DNA of 64,000 nt, from the sequence record MT811961.1, one strand, 5' to 3'. A model generated the notes under the pieces. That model was not told the origin of the DNA and ran no database searches. It worked only from the letters and a program-made list of their open reading frames with translations. Position numbers and translations under genes: made by a program. Numbering within the stretch: the first letter of the stretch is position 1; every line of letters starts with the position of its first letter. Shown here piece by piece: positions 25,471 through 38,589 of the stretch.

Positions 25471-25517
25471 CCTACCTGCCTTCGGGCAGGTAGGTATTCT
25501 TTCTTATTTTTTTTTTT
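25471..25517. terminator. Terminator between convergent genes (probably bidirectional)
   Basis: CCTACCTGCC-TTCG-GGCAGGTAGG with a long T tract on +; the minus-strand operon ends at 25518. Confidence 0.85.
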
Positions 25518-26162
25518 CTAAAATTCTTCGTGTAACACCGTACCATCATGAATGGCATAGTCGGCATAAAACTGCTCAAAGAACCGGTCATTGATATCCT
25601 TGACAATTTCAATTTCGCCAGTGTCTATCTTGTATGATTCCTCAGGCTTGAATGGTTTCTCAGCAAACTCCAGTGTGTCACCATAGAAGAATGTACCTTC
25701 ACCTAACTGTCGGTCACCACCGGAAAGATCAAAGTGTAGATAGTACGTTAGTGTACTTAAAGTATGCCCACCGATGATTTCTGTCCAGTCGTTTCGATTC
25801 CAGTTACCCGAACCAGCACGGTTACGGAAATAGGCACGTCCAGAAAAGTAAACGACGTCCTCATTCGCATATTCAGTTGTATTGTCGAATTGCGGAATCA
25901 GCGCAGTATAAACTTTAACTGGAGATGTACCCAAACCTTCACCGTCACGATATGTGGCCGTATCGCCATTAAGCACAAGTACCCCGTGATCTTCGTTATC
26001 CTCGATAGAGTCGACAAGAAACTCAATACCTTCGCGGTAGTTGTAAACGGCGTTTTCCACATAGCGATGATACATAAAGGAGTTCGTAATGTATAGGTTA
26101 GTCGGGGTGAAAACCACCCCGTTGTAACCCACAACACGAACAATGAATAACTCGTGATGCAT
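25518..26162 (-). CDS. Putative virion appendage accessory protein with a CBM5/12-like segment
   Basis: FDNTTEYANEDVVYFSGRAYF...WNRNDW; TAAGGAG SD; last gene of the minus-strand island. Confidence 0.6.
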   Translation of the reverse strand: MHHELFIVRVVGYNGVVFTPTNLYITNSFMYHRYVENAVYNYREGIEFLVDSIEDNEDHGVLVLNGDTATYRDGEGLGTSPVKVYTALIPQFDNTTEYANEDVVYFSGRAYFRNRAGSGNWNRNDWTEIIGGHTLSTLTYYLHFDLSGGDRQLGEGTFFYGDTLEFAEKPFKPEESYKIDTGEIEIVKDINDRFFEQFYADYAIHDGTVLHEEF

Positions 26163-26171
26163 TTCTACTCC

Positions 26172-26657
26172 TTAAAGTGTATAGCTGTATTCTTGAACAA
26201 AGTCAGCTTCAACAAACAAAGAACCTTGCTCGATGTCGTTTACTGTGCGCAGAACACGCATGTTGCTACCTTCGATCTTGGCTAGGTAAACACCCTTTGG
26301 ATATTGGAAACCGGGTGTATGTAAACCAGCAAAAGGCTTACCATCAATATCCGGAACATAGAACACAAGCCAGGCATTCATATTAGCAAAACCATATCCT
26401 GGATTTACAGGAATGTCCTGAATTGCACGAAAGTACCCTTTGGGTGTTCGGATTTCGTCACCAAACGAATAACTGATATTATTGTTAAACGCCGTATAAG
26501 TATTGACGTCCGGATTGATTGGTGGTTCAGAGTTACGATCAATCAATGCACCTGTTAAATCGATGATGGTGTTGACCACCAGTGCCAAGTCTTTACCTGT
26601 ACTGTTTAACGGGTTTTCTGGAGCATCGGTCGATACGATGTATTGGATATCACTCAT
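26172..26657 (-). CDS. Short paralog of 36682..37677 (putative virion appendage protein)
   Basis: IQYIV...PENPLNSTGKDLA..VNTIIDLTGALID versus IRYLV...PDDPDNSTGRMIADSVNGLIDLVGALED; shared YxxGxEIRT. Confidence 0.75.
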   Translation of the reverse strand: MSDIQYIVSTDAPENPLNSTGKDLALVVNTIIDLTGALIDRNSEPPINPDVNTYTAFNNNISYSFGDEIRTPKGYFRAIQDIPVNPGYGFANMNAWLVFYVPDIDGKPFAGLHTPGFQYPKGVYLAKIEGSNMRVLRTVNDIEQGSLFVEADFVQEYSYTL

Positions 26658-28534
26658 GATGATTTAATCTCCACGACATGCTGTGAAACAAAGCGACGTT
26701 TCTTCCTAAGCGGAATCGTACGTACAAGGACCGTCACAGAAGCTTTGTGTAGCGATACAGCCGTCTTAGGCTTCATCAATACAGTAACGGACTGTTTGTG
26801 TACTCGGTTAACCAGAGACGGACGCAGTACAGCATAAGCAGACTGCTTAAGTACGTTAGGGCCAGTCTTAGGCTTCAGTACCGCATAACCAGATTGCTTA
26901 AGAATATTTGGACCTGACTTAGGTTTCAATACCGCATAAGCTGTCTGTTTCAATACCTTCAGTTCTTCAGCCTTCACCAATACTGCTTCTGAAACCATAT
27001 GCTTGATTGCCGGACCTGGGTCAGGTTTCAAGACTGCTTCCGAAACAATATGTTTTACAGCTGGGCCTGGATCTGGTTTTAGTACGGCTTCCGATACAAG
27101 ATGGTTAACGTATGGACCAGCAGGTTTAGCTTCCAGTACAACCGAGATCGTTTGCTTCTGAAGTTTTAGTTCGGGTGGCAAAGGTTCCAATACTACGGAA
27201 ACGGTTTGCTTCTGGAGTTTCAGATTGGCTGGTTTAGGTTGAACAACAACCGAGACAGCTTGCTTCTGAAGTGTGACTTCGGGTGGTGGTGGCTTGATAA
27301 CAACCGATACTGCTTGCTTCTGCAATGTTGCTTTTGCCAAGACAGGTGTAAGTATCGCCTCGCGCATCAAGTGATGAACATGAGGACCAGCATCAGGTGC
27401 CAGTATTGTTTCACGCATCAAGTGATGTACGTGTGGACCATTCGTCTGTACTACCTCTGTAACACTTAGACCTTCGAAATTGATTTCGTATTGTGTATCA
27501 ACTGTAACGATCTTGTCATCATGGACAATGTGTTCGTCAGTACCTAAGTGGAAGCCACCTTGGTAATTGATCACAGAAGGATCTGGGTCGTTGGTCCATT
27601 CATGAGCAGTGCCATCGCCATAGCGAATGCGGTTTTCTGTTTGCGTCCAATTGCTACCAGCATTAGTAATACCAGCTACAGTAAGGTCGTCAGACGGTAC
27701 AGTACCACGGAAAGCATAGTGTAGCGCTGTCACAGTACCAAAACCGGACACACCATCCCAGGATGAACCACTCCAGGTCTTCTCGGTATATGGGGCCACA
27801 GCTCGACGATAACGTAAGTTACTGAAAGCGTCATACTGGATGTACAAAGCACGTTGACTGTTGTCGTTTCTGTCTGTCCAAGCAGAGCCATCATAAACAC
27901 GAATCGAACCATCTGCTTTAGTAATGGCAATTTCAGTATCGCCTGTACCAGCAATACAGTCTACAGTAGAAACATCTTCGCCATTGGTTACGTCGGTCCA
28001 AACATCATCACGTGTAACACGATAGATCTTATTGCCAGCAGAATCAACCACAAGGGCACTGTCTGACGTTGCATCAATACCAAGTGCACTAATGGCACTG
28101 ATGCCAGGATCATTGGCCATCTGTACCCAGGCGTTTTGTTCATAAACATAAAGACTGGTATTAGCCGACATCCAGATGTTACGTGAGCCAGCAGTTGCAT
28201 GCTCAATGCCAGTGGTTGGCACTGCAATACTAGAATCAACCCAGACGTTTGTACCGCCTGTTTGATTGGCCACCAAACCAACTACTTCCCCTGTTGTACC
28301 TGCCACAGTTATTGTTTTCGTAACTGTTGACGTGGTACTAGTCAGGCCAGTAAACTCAAGTGTGTCGTAAGTAAGACCAAAATCAAGGTTCTTAACTTCC
28401 ACGTTAATTGACGTGGCACCCGTGGTAGTGGCACCTAAAGTAATCTCTAAGTCTACTGGTCCGTCTTTTTGAAAGACATGCAGTATGGCAATTGTACCTG
28501 AATCACCAAGAATTTCTGGTGTTGTTGTACTCAT
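26654..28534 (-). CDS. Putative scaffold protein: N-terminal beta-sandwich/propeller plus a C-terminal array of 16-18-aa repeats
   Basis: Trp-spaced propeller-like blades in the middle; about 15 tandem repeats from residue 366 to the end; AAGGAG SD. Confidence 0.7.
   Translation of the reverse strand: MSTTTPEILGDSGTIAILHVFQKDGPVDLEITLGATTTGATSINVEVKNLDFGLTYDTLEFTGLTSTTSTVTKTITVAGTTGEVVGLVANQTGGTNVWVDSSIAVPTTGIEHATAGSRNIWMSANTSLYVYEQNAWVQMANDPGISAISALGIDATSDSALVVDSAGNKIYRVTRDDVWTDVTNGEDVSTVDCIAGTGDTEIAITKADGSIRVYDGSAWTDRNDNSQRALYIQYDAFSNLRYRRAVAPYTEKTWSGSSWDGVSGFGTVTALHYAFRGTVPSDDLTVAGITNAGSNWTQTENRIRYGDGTAHEWTNDPDPSVINYQGGFHLGTDEHIVHDDKIVTVDTQYEINFEGLSVTEVVQTNGPHVHHLMRETILAPDAGPHVHHLMREAILTPVLAKATLQKQAVSVVIKPPPPEVTLQKQAVSVVVQPKPANLKLQKQTVSVVLEPLPPELKLQKQTISVVLEAKPAGPYVNHLVSEAVLKPDPGPAVKHIVSEAVLKPDPGPAIKHMVSEAVLVKAEELKVLKQTAYAVLKPKSGPNILKQSGYAVLKPKTGPNVLKQSAYAVLRPSLVNRVHKQSVTVLMKPKTAVSLHKASVTVLVRTIPLRKKRRFVSQHVVEIKSS
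26660..27439 (-). repeat. Tandem coding repeats (about 51-54 nt, 16-18 aa)
   Basis: GPHVHHLMRExILxP x2; LQKQxVSVVxxP x4; GPxVxHxVSEAVL x3; LKQxxYAVLxP x3; HK(Q/A)SVTVL x2; terminal FVSQHVVEI. Confidence 0.9.
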
Positions 28535-28544
28535 GCGTTACTCC

Positions 28545-29822
28545 TTATAGTGCAACAAATGTCATTGCCATGTTGATGCCGGCGGAAATAACCATATTGT
28601 AGTTGGTATCATCCGTAGCGGCCACATAGCCGTTTCCATCCCATGTTACTTTGCCTTTGAACTCTTTAGATAAGTCGTCCAACCAAAGCCATAGGTAAAG
28701 ATCATCGGCCGTTCCGTATTTGACAGTATCGTCGCCTTTATTGAAAACTCGTACGGTACGTGCACCTGAGTCAACCTTGATACTCATCGTGGTGCCACCC
28801 GTCCAGTCTGCGCCGCCTGAGTCAAGACCATAACCTCCGCTTACTGCCGCAGAAGAGAAAGCTTGATAGTGTACATTCTCGACTGAAAGAGTAGAGGCAT
28901 TGATCACCGCAGGTGTCCAGACGGAACCATCGGTCGGGTTTACATCAGAAACAAACGTTGTTGGATTGTCTTCTGAGTCAGCAGTAACCGCAATAAAGCC
29001 AACGAAGTGGCGATTGCCATTCTCTTCCAAGATCTGTGCAAGATAAGGCGAATCAGTAGCACCAGACGTATCACTGATTGTAGAAAAGTTAACAGCCGCA
29101 ATATTCATATCGGTAGGTACAGCGGTAAAGTCAAACTTCGCAGTTGAGCCGACACCTGTGGAACTTACACCACCTTGGTCTGGAGCCAAAGTTTGCAGCT
29201 CAGCAATATCACCAGCAAAACCATTCAGAACCATAGAAGCAGGTGCTTCTGATTGGATACGCCAACCACGAGTGTCTGTTGTTGAAATAACACCCTCGGT
29301 GAGGTTCAGGTTAGTCGGAATTGCAAATGTGCAACTCAATAGGTTACAGTCAGCAGGCCATGCGAAATCGCCAGATGCGATCTGTGTACCATCTGCGAAA
29401 AGACGCCAACCATCAGTCTTCTTAAACTCGATATCGATGTCGATCCATTTATTAAGATCGAATGGAGTAAAGGTAACTGTTGAGCCAGAGCCACCACCAA
29501 TACTTGCGCCGTAACAAGAGCCACGCTGTAAGTTAATGGACATGCGCTTAGTCTTTGTTTCATCCCAGTAGAAGATACGCAGACCAGCGTCGCCAGTCCA
29601 CTTGAGACGAGTGTGTTGCCACATACCTTCGTCAGTAGAACAGTGAGCTTGTTGGAAGTACACACGGGCATCACTAGCACTTGACCAGTCGTTTAATGCC
29701 CAGTTAGTCATCGTATCCTCTGCGGATACATCTACCACTTTTTGACGAACCGAATCTGGTCCGAACGAATCGCCAGCAGGAATCGTGATTGAACCCGGAC
29801 TAATTGTTGCTAGAATAGTCAT
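28545..29822 (-). CDS. Paralog 6 of the tandem lectin/ConA-like putative receptor-binding family
   Basis: LTEGVISTTDTRGWRIQSEAPA and VNPTDGSVWTPAVINA core motifs. Confidence 0.7.
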   Translation of the reverse strand: MTILATISPGSITIPAGDSFGPDSVRQKVVDVSAEDTMTNWALNDWSSASDARVYFQQAHCSTDEGMWQHTRLKWTGDAGLRIFYWDETKTKRMSINLQRGSCYGASIGGGSGSTVTFTPFDLNKWIDIDIEFKKTDGWRLFADGTQIASGDFAWPADCNLLSCTFAIPTNLNLTEGVISTTDTRGWRIQSEAPASMVLNGFAGDIAELQTLAPDQGGVSSTGVGSTAKFDFTAVPTDMNIAAVNFSTISDTSGATDSPYLAQILEENGNRHFVGFIAVTADSEDNPTTFVSDVNPTDGSVWTPAVINASTLSVENVHYQAFSSAAVSGGYGLDSGGADWTGGTTMSIKVDSGARTVRVFNKGDDTVKYGTADDLYLWLWLDDLSKEFKGKVTWDGNGYVAATDDTNYNMVISAGINMAMTFVAL

Positions 29823-29834
29823 TTGTTTTCCCCA

Positions 29835-29872
29835 AAAAGGAGAGGGAGGATTACTCCCTCAGTTAAACTTAA
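29835..29872 (-). repeat. Intergenic repeat copy 1 (37/38 nt identical to 31183..31220) with hairpin
   Basis: Plus strand AAAAGGAGAGGGAGGATTACTCCCTCAGTTAAACTTAA; GAGGGAG/CTCCCTC stem. Confidence 0.9.
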
Positions 29873-31170
29873 AGTGGCAGGATGTACATTTTCATCTGCA
29901 TACCGGAAGCAGATATTACATCAAAGTCATCACTGCTCAGTCCAGACTTGTAGCCACCCGTAGTATCATCCCATGTTAGGACGCGGTTAACGGTAGGTTG
30001 TCCTGCTACATCTCGGCGAGTGTAATAAACATGAATCTTGTCCGATGTGCCCCACTTACGATTGGTGTCGGCATCACAGAAGATCCACAGGTTACGTGCA
30101 CTATAAGCATGCTGTAGTTCAATAGCACCACCGCCATCCCATTCGCCGCCTTTGACAAATTGAGCCGCACCACCAGTACCATAGACACCACTTGTAATCT
30201 GCGCAGTGTTGAAGTAGTGTTCAACTGGGTTGATTACTGTGATCTCTCGTTCTGATAAATCAGCAGTCGACCAGTTGGAACCATCCGATGGTTTGGTCTC
30301 ATGCACAAACGAGTTAGGGACATTTTCACCATCACTGTCTGTACTATGCAAACCTAGCAGGTTGCCGTCTAAGATATAAGCAAGCATTGGTGATTCTGGA
30401 GTACCATTTGTTTCGGCGATGGTATTGATTGTATGACCAGCTACTTTGTAACCACCAGGGACAACAGGCATCTTGGCCACAAACTCTGCACCGGCACCGC
30501 CAGAACTCAAACCATCTTCGGTCAGACCAGGCGTTTGAATGTTGACTACATCGCCACTAAACGTACTAGAAACAAGCGAGGCTGGTACTTCTGAAGCGAC
30601 ACGCCAGTTTCGAGTATCTTCGTTGGCGACAACCATTTCTGTTATCTCGCCACCTTGGATTCGGAATTGGAAAGCACTGGAGTCAGTACCCAGTATGTAA
30701 CTTCCAGAGTAATCATGCTCCAAGCTACCGTTGATGTAAACCTTGCCAGAACCCATTTCTAAATCAAAATCAAACCAGTCAGAACCCTCGGCAGGGAATG
30801 TACCACTAAAGCTCTGGTTATTCTGCTGTGTCTGGTTTCGCGTATGCATCATAAACCATGGGGTAACCTGTAGCCCCCAGTAGTCTTTATAGGTAGAGGA
30901 ATAGCCGCTTGGCTGGCCATAAAACTCAACGCCTATCTCAAAAGAACTAACTGTGCGCTTGACGCGCGCATGGAACCACAACGTACTCGTTGGAGTGGAT
31001 TTCATTGATAAGCGACTATGTGCCTTAGAGTTACAATCTGGAAACTTCCAGTTTGTCATTGTGTCGTCGGCCGTAGCATCTACCGCAAGTGTACGAATGT
31101 CATTGGCTGAATAAGCTTGACCAGCAGTAACCGGCAGTGAAGCAGGGTTAACTGTTAAAAGAATTGACAT
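29869..31170 (-). CDS. Paralog 5 of the tandem family
   Basis: ITEMVVANEDTRNWRVASEVPA and ETKPSDGSNWSTADL. Confidence 0.7.
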   Translation of the reverse strand: MSILLTVNPASLPVTAGQAYSANDIRTLAVDATADDTMTNWKFPDCNSKAHSRLSMKSTPTSTLWFHARVKRTVSSFEIGVEFYGQPSGYSSTYKDYWGLQVTPWFMMHTRNQTQQNNQSFSGTFPAEGSDWFDFDLEMGSGKVYINGSLEHDYSGSYILGTDSSAFQFRIQGGEITEMVVANEDTRNWRVASEVPASLVSSTFSGDVVNIQTPGLTEDGLSSGGAGAEFVAKMPVVPGGYKVAGHTINTIAETNGTPESPMLAYILDGNLLGLHSTDSDGENVPNSFVHETKPSDGSNWSTADLSEREITVINPVEHYFNTAQITSGVYGTGGAAQFVKGGEWDGGGAIELQHAYSARNLWIFCDADTNRKWGTSDKIHVYYTRRDVAGQPTVNRVLTWDDTTGGYKSGLSSDDFDVISASGMQMKMYILPL

Positions 31171-31182
31171 TTTGTTTTCTCC

Positions 31183-31220
31183 AAAAGGAGAGGGAGGTTT
31201 ACTCCCTCAGTTAAACTTAA
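31183..31220 (-). repeat. Intergenic repeat copy 2 with hairpin
   Basis: Plus strand AAAAGGAGAGGGAGGTTTACTCCCTCAGTTAAACTTAA. Confidence 0.9.
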
Positions 31221-32539
31221 GCTGCTCGGACAAAAATCCAAAGACCAGTTGTAGCGTTAGCTGACATCATGGAACGAACCTTTGCTGCTTCTGGATCGCC
31301 ATTGGTCGTTTCCCAGTATTCGCGGTCACCGATAGTACCACCATTGCGCTTCGCTTTGAAAGAGAAGATCTCGTCTGTATCGGCACCCTTGATGAGCACC
31401 ACGATGTTGTCACCCCATGCACCGACGGTTTCTGTGGTGGCCTGAATCACTACTTTGTCGCTTTGTTCGTAAAAGTATTCGAACTGAGTATAGCCGGCAG
31501 CCGGTTTCTTGTCGTAGGCTTCTGAGAAGCCAGAAGCTTTCTTGATGCCATACAATGAACCACTTGCACCAAAGTCACGAATACGCATGTCCCACAAGAA
31601 AGACTCTGCACCAAACTCAAGAGCATCGATTTCCGCCATTGTCCAAGCATTGCCTGTCAGTGGGTTAACTTCCATAATGTCTAATTGCGGAGCTAGAGCA
31701 CCGTCGGCATCAGGGGCAGATGCATTTGGACCGTAGCCAACATCCGTGCCATTCGTAACCATGTGGCGGAATATAGGAGCAGCAGGATTACCAGCAGTGT
31801 TAACAACAGAGCCAAGTACCAATGAATGAACTTGTAGTCCAGCGGCGTTTGCATCTGTACTAAAGTCAGAGTATTGGAAAGACTGTTTCATTGGACCATC
31901 AGCGCTTACAGAGTCCGCAGTAAGGTCTTCAGTGTTAATGCTATCTACAATACCACCAAACTCATCGAAGCTACCGGCTGCTTCTGGATCTAGCTTGGCT
32001 AGTCGCCAACCACGAGTATCTTCGTCAGCAATGATTACTTCACTCACGTCTGGTTGGTGTGTCACCAGTGCAATGCTATTAAACGTTGCATTGACGATCG
32101 AGAAAGTAGTATCATGAATTTGGTTTCCGTCCACGTAGAATGCCACGCGGTTATTGTAGAAATGGACGTCTATGTCCGCAACTGCCGCAGTCTGTGCTGG
32201 TGCACTTGCCGTACCGCCGCCAGGCTGCTGGGTATTAAGGAAGAATTGATCTCCACCACCAGAACCGATACGCAGTTTGTACGTACCGTCATTGGCAACC
32301 AAACTAAACTGTGCCGTTGCATTGAGTGAAGCACCGTTATTGGCATAGCGGAAGTGGATCCAAATATCTTTAGGAACATTTTCAGCAAACTTAACTGTTT
32401 GACCTGATTCAAATTCTACTTTGTCAAAAGAACCAGGTAGGTTAGATGCCTCTAGGCGTGTACGTGGGTCACCAGAACCCAGGTAGTCAGCAGAAGCAAC
32501 GATAGGTGTAACATCACCTAGGATAGCTAAAACAGCCAT
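31217..32539 (-). CDS. Paralog 4 of the tandem family
   Basis: VSEVIIADEDTRGWRLAKLDPEA and EVNPLTGNAWTMAEIDALEFG. Confidence 0.7.
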   Translation of the reverse strand: MAVLAILGDVTPIVASADYLGSGDPRTRLEASNLPGSFDKVEFESGQTVKFAENVPKDIWIHFRYANNGASLNATAQFSLVANDGTYKLRIGSGGGDQFFLNTQQPGGGTASAPAQTAAVADIDVHFYNNRVAFYVDGNQIHDTTFSIVNATFNSIALVTHQPDVSEVIIADEDTRGWRLAKLDPEAAGSFDEFGGIVDSINTEDLTADSVSADGPMKQSFQYSDFSTDANAAGLQVHSLVLGSVVNTAGNPAAPIFRHMVTNGTDVGYGPNASAPDADGALAPQLDIMEVNPLTGNAWTMAEIDALEFGAESFLWDMRIRDFGASGSLYGIKKASGFSEAYDKKPAAGYTQFEYFYEQSDKVVIQATTETVGAWGDNIVVLIKGADTDEIFSFKAKRNGGTIGDREYWETTNGDPEAAKVRSMMSANATTGLWIFVRAA

Positions 32540-32551
32540 AAATTAAATCTC

Positions 32552-33949
32552 CTAATAACCTTCAATCATTACTTCAAGAACTTGGCCTGCGCGATCTTTC
32601 AGCCATGAGTAGAAATAGCCGCCGTCACGACGATAGTCCTTGGCTGTATTATTCCAAGGAATCTGTTCGGTCTGGATATTTCCATCTGTCTCGCGGAAAT
32701 GCAATCGAACGCCATTTGGACCATGAGCCCACTTGCGGCCATCGTTGGTTTTAAAAATACCACGACCGTAGTTGTTTTGCCATTCCACTGATTCAATGAA
32801 TCCACCCGGAATACCATTCTCGTCGTACCATGTACCGCCAGAAATAAGATTGTTCAAGGTAGTACTATCTTTGCGGTAACCTTGGTAGTTGTTATTGCTA
32901 TTGGCAGTAGTGAAGGTAATGTGTGGAATGAAGTCTACATCCGCAACTGTTCCAGCAAACTCTACGCCCGCTTCCAGTGTATTTACTTCGGCTACTGTCC
33001 ATGCCTTGCCTGTCTTAGGATTGACTTCATGGAAAGCACTCAGAGCACGACCAGGGGACGTAGCAGTGATCTGCTTAGGCGCGAGTTCTTTGTGAACCTC
33101 GCCATCCGTCTTGATTGTCATCTGGGCATATTCTAGTTCAGATGCAGCCGACTTGCTTACCAATGCTTTCACATCGATCGCGCGAATACTGAGGTCAGAA
33201 TTAGAGGCAAAGGTGTTGTGTACATCAGTAAGACTGAAAAGATTCGCACCAGCTACTTCTGTTTCCATAGCTGCTTCATCCAGGCCGATCTCAGTAATGT
33301 CTGAGATATCGCCGCTCATATTGCCCGATGCCAAAGCGTCCGGCGTCAGAGTCAATAGACGCATACCTAGTGTAGGCTCGTCTTCCGTGATGATCAGTTC
33401 ACTAATTGGAATCGTACTGCCGCCATCAATCCAGACATAGAGCATTTTATAACTAGACTTGGCACTGTTACTCGTACCTGTCTTAATTAGAGCACCGTTA
33501 CAATATACTTCGAAGTAGCCCGTATTCGAATCAACATGTAGGTCGATTTCGGTTTGTGCAGCTTTGTCGTATTTGCCTGTTTCGTAACAGTATTCGCCAG
33601 CTGCCTGACACTGAATACGGCCATCGCTATAACCAACCGTGATTACTGTATTCGTATTGGAGCTTGGTGACGATGGGTGTTCTCCGATCTGTAACTTCAC
33701 ATAACGCGAGGTATCATTGCGTTGATTGAAACGAAAATGCACCCAGTATTTCTTGGTGTCACCTGGAGGAGGACTGACTTGAAATGGACTGAAGTTATAG
33801 TTCGGTCTTGGGGTTGCACGACGGTTTGCTTCTGGATCAAATGCGTCCGTATTCGTATCAACTTGTACACGAACGTCACTGCTAGTAAAGTAATAGTTAG
33901 GATCCGTTACCGTACCAGACAGTTCATTCTGCATAAATAAAATTGCCAT
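32552..33949 (-). CDS. Paralog 3 of the tandem family
   Basis: ISELIITEDEPTLGMRLLTLTPDA and EVNPKTGKAWTVAEVNTLEAG. Confidence 0.7.
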   Translation of the reverse strand: MAILFMQNELSGTVTDPNYYFTSSDVRVQVDTNTDAFDPEANRRATPRPNYNFSPFQVSPPPGDTKKYWVHFRFNQRNDTSRYVKLQIGEHPSSPSSNTNTVITVGYSDGRIQCQAAGEYCYETGKYDKAAQTEIDLHVDSNTGYFEVYCNGALIKTGTSNSAKSSYKMLYVWIDGGSTIPISELIITEDEPTLGMRLLTLTPDALASGNMSGDISDITEIGLDEAAMETEVAGANLFSLTDVHNTFASNSDLSIRAIDVKALVSKSAASELEYAQMTIKTDGEVHKELAPKQITATSPGRALSAFHEVNPKTGKAWTVAEVNTLEAGVEFAGTVADVDFIPHITFTTANSNNNYQGYRKDSTTLNNLISGGTWYDENGIPGGFIESVEWQNNYGRGIFKTNDGRKWAHGPNGVRLHFRETDGNIQTEQIPWNNTAKDYRRDGGYFYSWLKDRAGQVLEVMIEGY

Positions 33950-33963
33950 TATGGGCTCCTGTG

Positions 33964-35322
33964 TTATTCTACGTAAACGCTTACTGCTTTACCGGCACGG
34001 GCATGGAACCAGTTAACCAAGGTAGCGTCAGTAACTCGATAGTCACCCGAGTACGGAAATACTTTCGTAGTCTCTGCGCCGTCTTCGTCAACAAAGCGGA
34101 AAGTAATAGAATCCTTACCGTCTACTTTGTTGCCGCCGCCAGTACCAAATGCCGCGACAACACGGCCGTCGCTCTTATCGCCATAAAGAAAATAAGGACG
34201 ATCATGACCAGTTCTGTCTGTACTCGTAATCGAAGCAACTAAATCGCCGGTAGGTACGCCGTAAGCATAGTAACCAGCAATATTTGTATCATCATAACGA
34301 ACATCAAAACGAAGGACGAATAGTGGCGGTGTTTCTAAATTCACGCCAAACTCAGCAGCTTTGATTTCTGCTTCTGTCCATGCTGCGCCCGTGTTAGGGT
34401 TTACTTCGTAGAGTTCATTTAAAGAACCTCGACCACTTACAGTGTCTAGTAAACGACCGACAACTGGGCTGTGTTCATCCGCATCCGTTTTCAAGACATT
34501 ACGCATATAGTTTTGTTCCATGCCAGCTTCAGCTGATGCGACACTAGACACAGCGACTGCTTTAATGTCGTATGTACTAAAGTCGATTGCAGCATCCGGA
34601 TCAGTATAAGCAAACGTGTGTTTACCTGCCCCCGTAGACGTCACGCCGTCTGGGTTAAGTGACAATTCACTAACCGTACTCACATCGCCAGTAAAGTCAG
34701 TATGTGTGCCGTTTGCTTCTGGAACAAGAGAGATAACGCGCATGCCAATGGTGATTTCACCTTCGGTAACGATTACTTCTGAAGCACTGCGTCCAGCAGA
34801 TACTTTACGAATCTGAACAGAATCCCAAAGACTTGGTTTGAAACTAGAAACAATTGCCGAAGTACCAGAGGCTTCATTAACGCCATTGACATAAAAAGCA
34901 AAAGCGCCAGTGTCTGTATTCAGCATTACGTCTACGTGGTGGTTTCCATCTGCGACTGCTTTAGCGCCGATCTCTGTGCCACTCAGGTTCTTAATGCGAA
35001 CCTCGCCTGAACCACCTTCAATACGAAAGCCCTCTGCATTCGGAACACCGTCATAGCCAAAGTTGATGAGGCCATTGGAGTACCCATTCTGAACGTAGAT
35101 CATGGCATGGATCCACAGAACCGTAGCGTCACTCGATGCACCCGTCATCTTCATGCTGGCATATGCAAAGTTTCGGCTCTCTACTTCTACGCGACCACGA
35201 GAAAACACCGGGTCAAAGCCATCGCCCGTAGCTACCAAGCCACGACGCGGGTCACGTGCTGTGGTTTCGTCGTTTACAGAAACTTCACCATTGGCTTCGT
35301 TTTGAATAAATAAGAAAGTCAT
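33964..35322 (-). CDS. Paralog 2 of the tandem family
   Basis: ASEVIVTEGEITIGMRVISLVPEA and EVNPNTGAAWTEAEIKAAEFG. Confidence 0.7.
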   Translation of the reverse strand: MTFLFIQNEANGEVSVNDETTARDPRRGLVATGDGFDPVFSRGRVEVESRNFAYASMKMTGASSDATVLWIHAMIYVQNGYSNGLINFGYDGVPNAEGFRIEGGSGEVRIKNLSGTEIGAKAVADGNHHVDVMLNTDTGAFAFYVNGVNEASGTSAIVSSFKPSLWDSVQIRKVSAGRSASEVIVTEGEITIGMRVISLVPEANGTHTDFTGDVSTVSELSLNPDGVTSTGAGKHTFAYTDPDAAIDFSTYDIKAVAVSSVASAEAGMEQNYMRNVLKTDADEHSPVVGRLLDTVSGRGSLNELYEVNPNTGAAWTEAEIKAAEFGVNLETPPLFVLRFDVRYDDTNIAGYYAYGVPTGDLVASITSTDRTGHDRPYFLYGDKSDGRVVAAFGTGGGNKVDGKDSITFRFVDEDGAETTKVFPYSGDYRVTDATLVNWFHARAGKAVSVYVE

Positions 35323-35332
35323 TTCTTACTCC

Positions 35333-36682
35333 TTAAAATGTTTCTACCCAAGCATTCAGTACTTGACCAACACTCGCATTGAACTTGGCTTCTAGTGTAT
35401 CGTTACGACTAGACTTAAAGCTGCCGCCAAAACCAGTATTGTAGGACATGGTGTTCGTAACAAAGTAGGTGCCGTCTTCAAACAACAGATGAATACGTGC
35501 GCTCGTACTGCCATGCCAACCGCCACTAGCGGTCTTTGGACTCAGTAACAGATAATTATTGTCTACGGAGTAATAGAAAGCATCGACGATTGATTCGTCC
35601 TTGCCGCCCAGTAGTGTACCGAACGTACTGCCTTCTGTACGCCAACCGCGTAGACTACCATCGCTTGCAATACGAATCTTCAAGTCAGGCTGACCAACTG
35701 CCACACCGGCTTCCAAAGCATTGATCTCAGACACAGTCCAAGCTGCTCCCGTTTCTGGGTTTGTTGTCATGACTGTATTGAGTGACTTCGAATCACTAGT
35801 AGTGTCAGACACAAGGAAGTCATATGGTGCATGTATATTGCCATTAACCCGCACTGCGTTTTGAACAAACTTGTCGACGAAAGTCTCATCCGCAGTAGAC
35901 ACAGTAGATACGGTCACTGCTGCAATGTTGTACTGACTCATATCGATACCTGCATCAATGTCAGTATAGTCAAACATAAAGTTACCAGCACCAATAGTAG
36001 TCATACCGTCGTTGCTGAGTGATACTTCGTTAACTGTCGCAACAGCACCTTCAAGGCTATTGTCTGATGCAGCTGCCTCTGGGGCAAGTGTAGCGACACG
36101 CATGCCGATCGTAGGCTTCGCTTCCGCAATGATCATTTCGGTAAACGAGGTACCAGCTGCACTACGTAGCCCAGACTTCATATAACAGTCTAGCCCCATG
36201 TCAACAATCCATGAGTGCGTACCACTGCCTTTAGATAGACCATCTTGAAATATTTCAAAGGCACCCGTGCCGAAGTTGATTTTAACGTCAAAATCCGATT
36301 GGTTGCTTACATTAGTCAGGTTCACTGAGGCGTCACGTCCAGCAAAGTCGACAATTCTCGCTCTGCTGTTTTCTATGCGCAATTCAAAATGTCGACCTGT
36401 ACCAGCTGGTGTCGTAAATGCCCATGCCGAAGAGCCAGAAGACAAAACAAGAGAGCGGAAATGAAACCAAATATCCGAAGAGGTATTTGCAGGTGGTTCG
36501 GTTACAAACCAACCTTTACCTAGGGCATGGTTGGAAGCCTGTGAGTGTCCACGACTAAACTTCTCATCGCGAAACTGAGGATAGATTGGATTCAACACCA
36601 CACGTTGGTCATAATCTGTACTACCTACTTCGGCTTCTGTTGTAAAACCATGAGACTCATTAAAGACGAAAAGAAAACTCAT
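35333..36682 (-). CDS. Paralog 1 of the tandem family
   Basis: FTEMIIAEAKPTIGMRVATLAPEA and TNPETGAAWTVSEINALEAG. Confidence 0.7.
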   Translation of the reverse strand: MSFLFVFNESHGFTTEAEVGSTDYDQRVVLNPIYPQFRDEKFSRGHSQASNHALGKGWFVTEPPANTSSDIWFHFRSLVLSSGSSAWAFTTPAGTGRHFELRIENSRARIVDFAGRDASVNLTNVSNQSDFDVKINFGTGAFEIFQDGLSKGSGTHSWIVDMGLDCYMKSGLRSAAGTSFTEMIIAEAKPTIGMRVATLAPEAAASDNSLEGAVATVNEVSLSNDGMTTIGAGNFMFDYTDIDAGIDMSQYNIAAVTVSTVSTADETFVDKFVQNAVRVNGNIHAPYDFLVSDTTSDSKSLNTVMTTNPETGAAWTVSEINALEAGVAVGQPDLKIRIASDGSLRGWRTEGSTFGTLLGGKDESIVDAFYYSVDNNYLLLSPKTASGGWHGSTSARIHLLFEDGTYFVTNTMSYNTGFGGSFKSSRNDTLEAKFNASVGQVLNAWVETF

Positions 36683-37677
36683 TACATCAAGCCCTCCAAA
36701 GTAATGGAAATGTTAGCCAGTGTTTTGTCGGCTACGCCGTTTTGTTTTAGTGTGATCGTATCACCTGTTGTTACTGAAACGTCACCGGTCGAAACGAATG
36801 TTCCTGTAGTGTCGCCAGTAGCAAAATTGATTGTGCCGATCTGGGTTGCACCATGCAGGACAACAAGAGAGGTATCTGCCTCGGCTGCTGTGGCCGCAAC
36901 TGCAACTGAGTTAGGGAAGTTTTGCTTAAAGACAAAGTCTTGTGTAATAACTTCGATAAAGATCTCTTCATCATCATCGGTGGTGTCTTGAATAAAACAC
37001 TTGATATTAAAGAGAGTTGTTGTGTTTACTTGGAAAACCGAATCCCACTGAGTCGGATCAAATGGACCTGCCGTTTCGATCTTGTCCTTCGATACATATA
37101 CACCGTCGTTGTATGTTACGAAAACACCAGCTTCATAGGTTGCAGTATCATCAAAAGTACCAGACCAGTCTTGCATACCACCACGGTCATACGTAGCGTC
37201 TACTTGCCACTGGGCAGGATCAAATGGTGTACCTGGATCGATGTCTTCCAGCGCACGCATAACAATCACATTGTCCGGCGTTAGACGTACTGTTGCTGTG
37301 TTGGCAAAGTATCCGTTTACTTCATCATAGATGCCGCCATAAGCAGCACCGCCGTCAGCAGGCATGTGGGTTAAAGCCCAAAAGTTACGGTTGGTCAAAC
37401 TAATGTTGCTGTTGGCAGGTACGTTGGAAATACAACGGAAATAACCAAAAGCAGTGCGGATCTCAGATCCTGCCAAGTATGGGTAATCAGAGTTATGTAC
37501 TTTGCTTACCACCACAGAAGGGTCTGGATCTGGCCAACTGGAATTATCTTCCAGTGCACCAACCAAGTCAATCAGACCATTCACCGAGTCTGCGATCATG
37601 CGGCCGGTTGAGTTATCTGGATCGTCTGGTTCTTTTTTAGCCACCAAGTAACGAATTGGAAATGATGTATTCCGCAT
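36682..37677 (-). CDS. Putative virion appendage protein with CBM5/12-like repeats
   Basis: Start moved to ATG 37677 (AGGAG SD); FDDTATYEAGVFVTYNDGVYVS...FDPTQW and a second FDPAQW; first gene of the minus-strand island. Confidence 0.65.
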   Translation of the reverse strand: MRNTSFPIRYLVAKKEPDDPDNSTGRMIADSVNGLIDLVGALEDNSSWPDPDPSVVVSKVHNSDYPYLAGSEIRTAFGYFRCISNVPANSNISLTNRNFWALTHMPADGGAAYGGIYDEVNGYFANTATVRLTPDNVIVMRALEDIDPGTPFDPAQWQVDATYDRGGMQDWSGTFDDTATYEAGVFVTYNDGVYVSKDKIETAGPFDPTQWDSVFQVNTTTLFNIKCFIQDTTDDDEEIFIEVITQDFVFKQNFPNSVAVAATAAEADTSLVVLHGATQIGTINFATGDTTGTFVSTGDVSVTTGDTITLKQNGVADKTLANISITLEGLM

Positions 37678-37754
37678 GGGAGTTACTCCTGTCAATTACG
37701 TAATTAAGCTGCACTCGCAGCATAAAATTTGTTGTGATCATTTAAAACATAATC

Positions 37755-37770
37755 CTATATTACTATAGTG
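37755..37770 (+). promoter_or_regulatory. phiKZ-type early promoter motif
   Basis: CTATATTACTATAGTG in the divergent intergenic region. Confidence 0.7.
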
Positions 37771-37800
37771 ACTGAAGCCACGAAAATAAAAGGATGCAAG

Positions 37801-38589
37801 ATGTCTGAAGAAGTTAGACTACTCATCTTAGACATAGATGAAGTAGCCACAAATCACTGGACGTTTATGGAAGGCGAAACTGCCAATATAAACTCCGTCG
37901 TAATCGAGATGATCAATGATCTTTGTCATCTTTACAACCTTAAAATCTCTTTCATCAGTACATGGGCTGATCACGGGGATGGAACAAACAGCAACTCAGA
38001 AAAAGCGATGCTGCATAAGCTAGCTGATGCGATGGGTTTTCATCGTGGTTTAGTATGGCACAAATGCCCTCGTGTACCGAAGCCTACTTCTTTCCGTGGA
38101 GATCGCATGCGGAAATTGCTCACCGATCATCCAGAGATCACGGACTATGTCATTATTGACGATAGCTGTGATTATTATGAAGAGCACCAACCACGACTCG
38201 TACACATCGATTCTGTGGGTGGTTTTACTGCACGTGATTATCTTGCTGTTCGCTCACTATTTGAACCCGCTTATGGTCAGTATGTGTACAATACTGCTCA
38301 CTCTGGTATTTATACAAACAAACCAAACTGGATCTACACAAAGATGAGTGAAGAAACAAAACATCTTAAAGCAGGTGAGTCTTATCGCGAAGGCGAGATT
38401 GTTTATCTGCCTGACAGCGATTGTTTTGTTCAATTCAACTATGATGTAGAACCAGATATAACTTGTGGTAACTACGTACCAATCGTTTTGGTTGGACGCG
38501 GAGTCAACGCACGGGTACTGAAGTCGGTTGAACTCAATCAACTATTTATTACAAACTTTATCCAAAAACATGGTAACGGAGATAAGTAA
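37801..38589 (+). CDS. HAD-superfamily protein (HAD_SAK_2-like, RNA-repair-associated type)
   Basis: LILDIDEV (DxD), ISFISTW, RG..MRKLL..HPEITDYVIIDD, IDSVGGFT; start moved to ATG 37801 (AAGGA upstream). Confidence 0.75.
   Translation: MSEEVRLLILDIDEVATNHWTFMEGETANINSVVIEMINDLCHLYNLKISFISTWADHGDGTNSNSEKAMLHKLADAMGFHRGLVWHKCPRVPKPTSFRGDRMRKLLTDHPEITDYVIIDDSCDYYEEHQPRLVHIDSVGGFTARDYLAVRSLFEPAYGQYVYNTAHSGIYTNKPNWIYTKMSEETKHLKAGESYREGEIVYLPDSDCFVQFNYDVEPDITCGNYVPIVLVGRGVNARVLKSVELNQLFITNFIQKHGNGDK

Follow-up and report, generated by a model that had tools for sequence, protein, structure and literature searches.

The stretch analysed here (the window) is 64,000 nucleotides of sequence record MT811961.1, from vB_pir03 (pir03), a 286-kb jumbo phage of Vibrio harveyi; phage C-ZP2022 is 97.5% identical to the window. 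It contains an island of ten genes, the largest example so far of a two-part tail module that is widespread and previously undescribed; in this module, paralogous proteins with a predicted lectin-like fold are followed by a protein of short tandem repeats. An original prediction, made from the sequence letters and their open reading frames (ORFs), had described a 12.2-kb, 10-gene minus-strand island in a plus-strand region. An ORF scan of the window agrees with this, placing 10 minus-strand ORFs at 25518-37695 with all their surroundings on the plus strand, as does the GenBank annotation of MT811961.1, which has the identical 10 genes, each labelled hypothetical. The island consists of a tail-fibre-like gene (g337), six paralogs (p449, p452, p465, p440, p433 and p425), a 626-residue repeat protein (g626) and two small genes (g161 and g214).

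The six paralogs, of 425-465 residues, are mutually homologous (pairwise BLASTP E-values of 2e-4 to 7e-51) and form three types by BLASTP: p449/p452/p465, p433/p425 and p440. Five of them matched phrog_6368, a PHROGs family of unknown function, with E-values of 3e-8 to 2e-30. In a six-way alignment the W and H of a WxH motif, the E, T and R of a hinge, and the P, G and W of an NPxTGxxW motif were invariant. BLASTP paralogy and these invariant columns bear out the common architecture and the motifs proposed earlier for six adjacent genes. The C-terminal tips had been called unrelated; they are indeed divergent, but those of p425 and p433 (E = 2e-8) and of p452 and p465 (E = 9e-6) are homologous.

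A full HMMER search of a 1.84-billion-protein library with a profile of the six paralogs retrieved 1,813 representatives at 50% identity, whereas word-index protein searches gave only 2, 6 and 1 matches. Most representatives are 320-340 residues long and stop exactly at the end of the middle domain; about 25 are of the longer, three-domain kind. Pfam has no family on record for the members seen, apart from one faint Laminin_G_3 match, and the paralog profile had no sequence match in the PDB.

An AlphaFold2 model of p440 was obtained with a predicted local distance difference test score (pLDDT) of 83.7 from 106 aligned sequences. The N-terminal domain of the model is a jelly roll resembling galectins and concanavalin A (ConA). 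Foldseek matched it to fungal galectins with E-values of about 1e-6 and a target template modelling (TM) score of about 0.55, and gave a probability of 1.00 against fungal and animal galectins and the carbohydrate-binding module CBM66. The model and these matches fit the ConA/lectin-like N-terminal region of the original prediction. Receptor-binding parts of a clostridial neurotoxin, also returned by Foldseek, were rejected, as the match was limited to the common jelly roll. The middle and tip domains of p440, modelled separately (pLDDT 86.4), had no fold match in the PDB (Foldseek, best E = 0.034). When predicted viral structures were searched with the whole protein, the matches were uncharacterised proteins, frequently several to a genome, of numerous unrelated phages.

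A jelly roll of this kind could also belong to an enzyme of the ConA-like glucanase superfamily, or to a capsid decoration protein, rather than to a receptor binder. The paper describing pir03 calls ORF243 a putative glycosylhydrolase from IPR013320 alone (PMC7765460), and some N4-like phages carry the gene outside the main tail block. However, the top structural matches were lectins and a carbohydrate-binding module, with no hydrolases, and the paralogs matched no enzyme family in NCBIfam or PHROGs. Paralogs lie within tail modules, and in the siphophage contig L012 a J-like central tail fibre has a fused paralog unit at its C-terminus. We consider an enzymatic or capsid role highly improbable; a decoration protein of the N4 type was not supported by any search.

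The relatives of the paralogs are tail-associated. Their genes sit after the tape-measure, tip and LtfC-like genes, and the module of the T5-like phage VCPH adjoins an LtfC-like gene upstream (a weak LtfC Pfam match). In the Achromobacter phage AchV4, the products AchV4_0024, AchV4_0025 and AchV4_0026 were found in virions by liquid chromatography-tandem mass spectrometry (LC-MS/MS) (PMC7996906). AchV4_0025 and AchV4_0026 belong to the paralog family, and a 578-residue repeat protein, AchV4_0028, follows. The fusion, the gene positions and the AchV4 proteomics thus support the proposed multi-paralog host-recognition module on the virion tail. Judged from the structural models, the paralogs are probably glycan-binding subunits of this module. 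In a panel of 51 strains drawn from several Vibrio species, pir03 infected 31 (PMC7765460).

Between pir03 and C-ZP2022 (L024), which were isolated on different Vibrio species, the island is almost identical except for one patch within 35333-37200. The patch holds 66 base differences in the 3' half of g337 and 178 in the first two-thirds of p449, and of the 34 amino-acid changes in p449, 32 fall in the lectin and middle domains. The patch has the appearance of one recombination tract.

The second part of the module is represented in pir03 by g626, whose gene starts 10 bases past p425. Residues 367-609 contain 14 clear units at a spacing of 16-18 residues, and a possible degenerate unit lies at about residue 351. 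Each unit has one beta-strand-like stretch with two hydrophobic residues at its end, followed by a proline-rich linker. Identity was 0.73 within blocks of units versus 0.27 between them, and the DNA of the array forms tandem repeats of period 51 and 54. A periodicity detector run over the whole window flagged g626 as the sole gene; an 87-codon antisense ORF within the array (27206-27469, plus strand) was also flagged as periodic, but it only mirrors the repeats and is no gene. Single-linkage clustering, which is unstable on these units, gave four classes at a cut-off of at least 7/12 identities and one class at 6/12. A second algorithm also yielded four, and five were distinguished by eye (2:4:3:3:2). 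The earlier count of about 15 repeats agrees with 14 clear units plus a basic strand in the tail, but its six or so classes are reduced to four by cut-off or five by eye.

The protein has the layout of the strand-repeat partners found beside paralogs in other phages: at least two units of 16-20 residues, then a basic cluster with a final strand, in a gene adjoining a paralog. The same basic tail strand is present in mini-proteins of VCPH, pCB2051-A, L028, L041, L044 and L047. No match to g626 was found in PHROGs, NCBIfam or the PDB sequences, and its N-terminal 350 residues align with the L008 homologue alone. A locus search of viral contigs with the repeat region as query found no relative. 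A unit model that had pir03 as its sole seed missed divergent classes.

Modules of the same kind occur in diverse genomes. Two are present in phage sm033, each composed of a g337-like gene, three paralogs, a 206-207-residue protein of repeats plus tail only, and g161-like and g214-like genes; both modules recur in the metagenomic contig L011 (64 kb). By eye, three-paralog modules have three blocks of units in constant order, with 3:4:4, 3:3:5, 2:3:4 and 2:5:5 copies. The 53-kb contig L005/L008 carries five paralogs, and the contig end cuts its repeat protein. VCPH has three successive sets of a small protein ending in a phrog_7049 domain, a paralog and a repeat protein, the last being of 72, 336 and 66 residues. 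Its two mini-proteins (72 and 66 residues) each contain three repeats of one class. The 336-residue protein follows one paralog and has an array of 18 units in three classes; units at 123-180 are 61-67% identical to the class of the first mini-protein and units at 21-106 are 53-64% identical to that of the second.

Simpler arrangements are more common, and the module is not specific to jumbo phages, among which a survey had originally been proposed; small phages with a simple pair account for most members. Single-paralog loci mostly encode mini-proteins of 48-84 residues with only about two to four repeats of one class and the basic tail strand; in pCB2051-A (Casjensviridae), for example, one paralog is followed by a 74-residue protein of three repeats plus tail. 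In N4-like Vibrio phages each paralog is followed by a larger protein with two or three repeats between domains of its own. L012 encodes, after its central tail fibre, four free paralogs and then an 11-unit repeat protein. In the 91.5-kb IMG/VR contig L043 (416-11506) there are seven paralogs, a lone copy and three successive pairs, and every pair has its own repeat protein, of 13, 7 and about 4 units. Among otherwise unrelated proteins the repeats can be N-terminal, internal or C-terminal, or can stand by themselves.

Two further observations concern the cassette in these genomes. Three independent short-read contigs (L005, L006 and L007) each end inside the repeat array of a g626 homologue, so metagenome assemblies probably contain too few genes of this type, or only truncated ones. 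A divergently transcribed polynucleotide kinase gene (HAD_SAK_2) adjoins the cassette in three related jumbo phages: in the window (37768-38589), in L005 (2683-3471) and in L011 (1-402). Since this kinase flanks a fixed site but the paralogs number six, five and 3+3, the cassette appears to be a hotspot of host-range evolution.

The association between paralogs and repeats was examined quantitatively. In 42 of 46 modules (34 loci) the ORF that immediately follows the run of paralogs had at least two periodic units. A further 22 IMG/VR loci were gathered by paralog similarity alone (alignment A5, tightened). In these loci at least two units were present in 22 of 25 paralog-downstream ORFs versus 95 of 371 others (Fisher p = 5e-10), a level at which the repeat detector has a sizeable background; at least three were present in 17 of 25 versus 32 of 371 (p = 1e-11). 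One flagged ORF, in L030, was a glycine-rich false positive. All four family members that were picked irrespective of context had a repeat-bearing ORF directly downstream. Across the 46 modules, which share descent and are not phylogenetically independent, paralog number correlated with unit number (Spearman rho 0.65) and with class number (rho 0.58), both counted with one algorithm. The mean number of classes was 1.26 for one paralog, 2.1 for two and 3.8 for three; the single four-paralog and the single six-paralog module had four classes each. Class and paralog number therefore rise together, the covariation for which a survey had been suggested. Functional coupling of paralogs and repeats is well supported by these comparisons.

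The mini-proteins consist of repeats and tail strand only and could do little beyond linking other parts. Since, in addition, the repeats are found at any position in their carriers, they are probably a portable docking element. A precedent for such docking is the T5-like phage DT57C, in which LtfA attaches to the LtfC collar by short beta-strands on flexible linkers that join the sheets of the partner (PMC10713586). Portability and this precedent together led us to favour a model in which the island is a tail-fibre cassette and the repeats dock the lectin-like paralogs to the tail, which we regard as moderately likely. The six paralogs would be host-recognition subunits, each built of a galectin/ConA-like N-terminus, the conserved middle domain and a tip that varies. 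The C-terminal part of g626 would form a flexible tether of fourteen short beta-strands with proline-rich linkers between them, and blocks of two to four similar strands would hold the paralogs, most likely by strand addition to the sheet of the middle domain. The terminal basic strand would anchor the tether to the tail, perhaps via g337 or g161. Simple phages would have one paralog and a mini-tether, and in pir03 several tethers may have merged into one scaffold for six paralogs.

The same repeats could alternatively fold together, within one chain or between several, into a fibrous beta shaft, with the paralogs bound at another place such as the phrog_7049 domain or the basic tail. A period of 16-20 residues with one strand and a Gly/Pro turn does resemble the shaft repeats of viral fibres, and the VCPH classes that recur on different chains could pair like with like. 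Against this, arrays are as short as two units, lie at any position in the carrier protein and lack a C-terminal knob, as does the sequence of g626. The mini-proteins have nothing but repeats and tail, so the partner must contact one of these, and a shaft offers no reason for the scaling of classes with paralogs. We think a shaft rather unlikely.

Within the tether model, the variable residues of the first half of each strand could specify which paralog is bound, the invariant hydrophobic pair and the proline acting as a common grip. Such an address code is a tentative proposal, and we hold it to be doubtful. Several observations count against it or against the tether itself. The class number of g626 is soft and depends on the threshold. 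There are six paralogs in pir03 and four to five classes; the three-class VCPH array lies beside one paralog; and L008 has an extra class although three of its paralogs are orthologous to those of pir03. Orthologous modules also differ in copy number (3:4:4 versus 2:5:5). The original prediction of class-specific strands, if read strictly as one class per paralog, is contradicted by the pir03 and VCPH counts. Gene order and block order do not correspond one-to-one and colinearly either when pir03 is compared with L008. The set stoichiometry of 2:4:3:3:2:1 had only the repeat counts behind it and is not upheld, as copy numbers vary between orthologous modules. The kinship of the modules and the two-unit background of the detector mean that the scaling figures describe a trend, not a law.

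The remaining points on this side concern the virion. For pir03 there is no published virion proteomics, and the AchV4 repeat protein, AchV4_0028, is missing from the list of virion-detected proteins (PMC7996906). If the repeat protein were an assembly scaffold or chaperone that acts in the infected cell to align or fold the paralogs and is not retained in the virion, it would go undetected while AchV4_0024, AchV4_0025 and AchV4_0026 were detected, as was observed. However, AchV4_0027, the third AchV4 paralog, is likewise missing (PMC7996906), so the absence of AchV4_0028 is weak evidence. In the N4-like Vibrio phages, L026, L031 and L045 the repeats are inside large proteins with globular domains, one of them galactose-binding-like, and in roseophage RD-1410Ws-07 gp72, encoded directly upstream of the paralog, has weak periodic repeats and is annotated as structural. 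These proteins make a purely transient role quite improbable, and the tether remains the reading that we prefer.

The genes bracketing the paralogs and g626 had been described as mutually paralogous with carbohydrate-binding-like motifs. Paralogy was confirmed, as g161 (161 residues) aligns with residues 14-169 of g337 (337 residues) at 34% identity (E = 7e-27), but family searches found no carbohydrate-binding signal in either. Residues 192-334 of g337 matched phrog_7049, annotated 'tail fiber protein' (E = 2e-8), the domain that in VCPH is present in three proteins, one directly upstream of each paralog. No PDB sequence matched g337, and NCBIfam gave nothing above its cut-offs; for g214 the sole family signal was a sub-threshold jelly-roll match (E = 0.016). 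Beside the modules of sm033 (L002 15735-18916) and L011 (14494-17786) there is an extra pair, consisting of a g214-like gene and a gene for a protein of 854-892 residues. The latter has no PHROG match, and its N-terminus resembles those of g161 and g337 by eye; it may be a further fibre on the same kind of base.

Branched receptor-binding systems include those of CBA120 (TSP1-4), G7C (gp63.1/gp66), KP32-type phages, phiKp24 and RaK2. The pir03 module looks like another form of such a system, in that several host-recognition proteins would be mounted on one tail via adaptor elements. In the known systems the docking peptide is part of each secondary protein, which fits into a folded branching domain, whereas in pir03 a separate chain would bear the peptides one after another, and the folded receivers would be the recognition proteins. 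In KP32-type phages, a short conserved peptide of receptor-binding protein RBP2 docks to the branching domain of RBP1 (PMC13352976). A gp10-like or XD branching domain was not found in g337, g626, g161 or g214 by PHROGs, NCBIfam and PDB sequence searches. With LtfA and LtfC the module would share strand addition via flexible linkers, and VCPH also shares the neighbouring LtfC-like gene; LtfA, however, uses two strands at its own N-terminus to bind a collar ring, whereas here there are up to 18, sorted into classes, on a dedicated chain. PHROGs and NCBIfam searches found no LtfC homologue in the pir03 island.

The island had also been likened to cellulosome scaffoldins, in which one chain with repeated docking sites gathers different functional subunits. 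There, folded cohesins of about 140 residues bind calcium-dependent dockerins, whereas the candidate docking sites here are peptides of 16-20 residues; the g626 units, of 16-18 residues, are too short to be domains. As family and PDB sequence searches found no cohesin or dockerin signal in either partner, the comparison does not extend beyond the general plan. Chaperone-usher pili polymerise by donor-strand complementation, in which every subunit gives one strand to its successor. The module would resemble them in that a sheet is completed by a single strand of a different chain; it would differ in that the donor is one chain supplying many strands to separate proteins.

The features of the island are listed below. 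Its G+C content is slightly above that of the flanks, and intergenic spacing is narrow except for two 46-base gaps. These only long gaps are occupied by two near-identical G+C-rich hairpins, each with a T-run, on the minus strand at 31190-31208 (after p440) and 29842-29860 (after p433), which may be attenuators or RNA-stability elements.

Features of the pir03 island, with positions in the 64,000-nucleotide window
Feature	Position	Strand	Remarks
g337, first gene of the island	36682-37677	-	alternative TTG start at 37695
p449, paralog type I	35333-36682	-	phrog_6368 match; BLASTP against p452 6e-42, full length
p452, paralog type I	33964-35322	-	L008 ortholog, 293 bits
p465, paralog type I	32552-33949	-	alignment and BLASTP to other paralogs
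p440, paralog type III	31217-32539	-	phrog_6368 E = 1.7e-30; structure modelled
p440, lectin-like domain	32024-32539	-	
p440, conserved middle domain	31544-32023	-	
p440, tip	31220-31501	-	
p433, paralog type II	29869-31170	-	BLASTP against p425 7e-51; L008 ortholog, 610 bits
p425, paralog type II	28545-29822	-	BLASTP, alignment
g626, N-terminal 350 residues, globular	27485-28534	-	missing from repeat-only homologues in other phages
g626, repeat array (residues 367-609)	26708-27436	-	14 units in blocks of 2, 4, 3, 3, 2
g626, C-terminal tail (610-626), basic cluster and one strand	26657-26707	-	kept after the last repeat in relatives
g161, stand-alone N-terminal domain of g337	26172-26657	-	kept in every jumbo-phage module
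g214, last gene of the island	25518-26162	-	kept in every jumbo-phage module; homologues sm42, sm35, L011 b205
Bidirectional terminator-like hairpin	25471-25494		between island end and convergent plus-strand gene

Host recognition is less predictable than any other part of phage biology. A family of 1,813 representatives without a Pfam family or a solved structure now has an obligate partner with a simple sequence signature. If that partner is a tether, many gene pairs of marine and soil phages now labelled 'hypothetical' could be annotated as tail-fibre subunits and adaptors, and the number and kinds of recognition subunits could be estimated from sequence. The module would then be a new, minimal way to mount several receptor binders per tail, beside the known branched systems. 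Were the address code also true, the host-recognition make-up of a phage would be readable from one small gene, and one peptide-receiver pair would serve myo-, sipho- and podophages.

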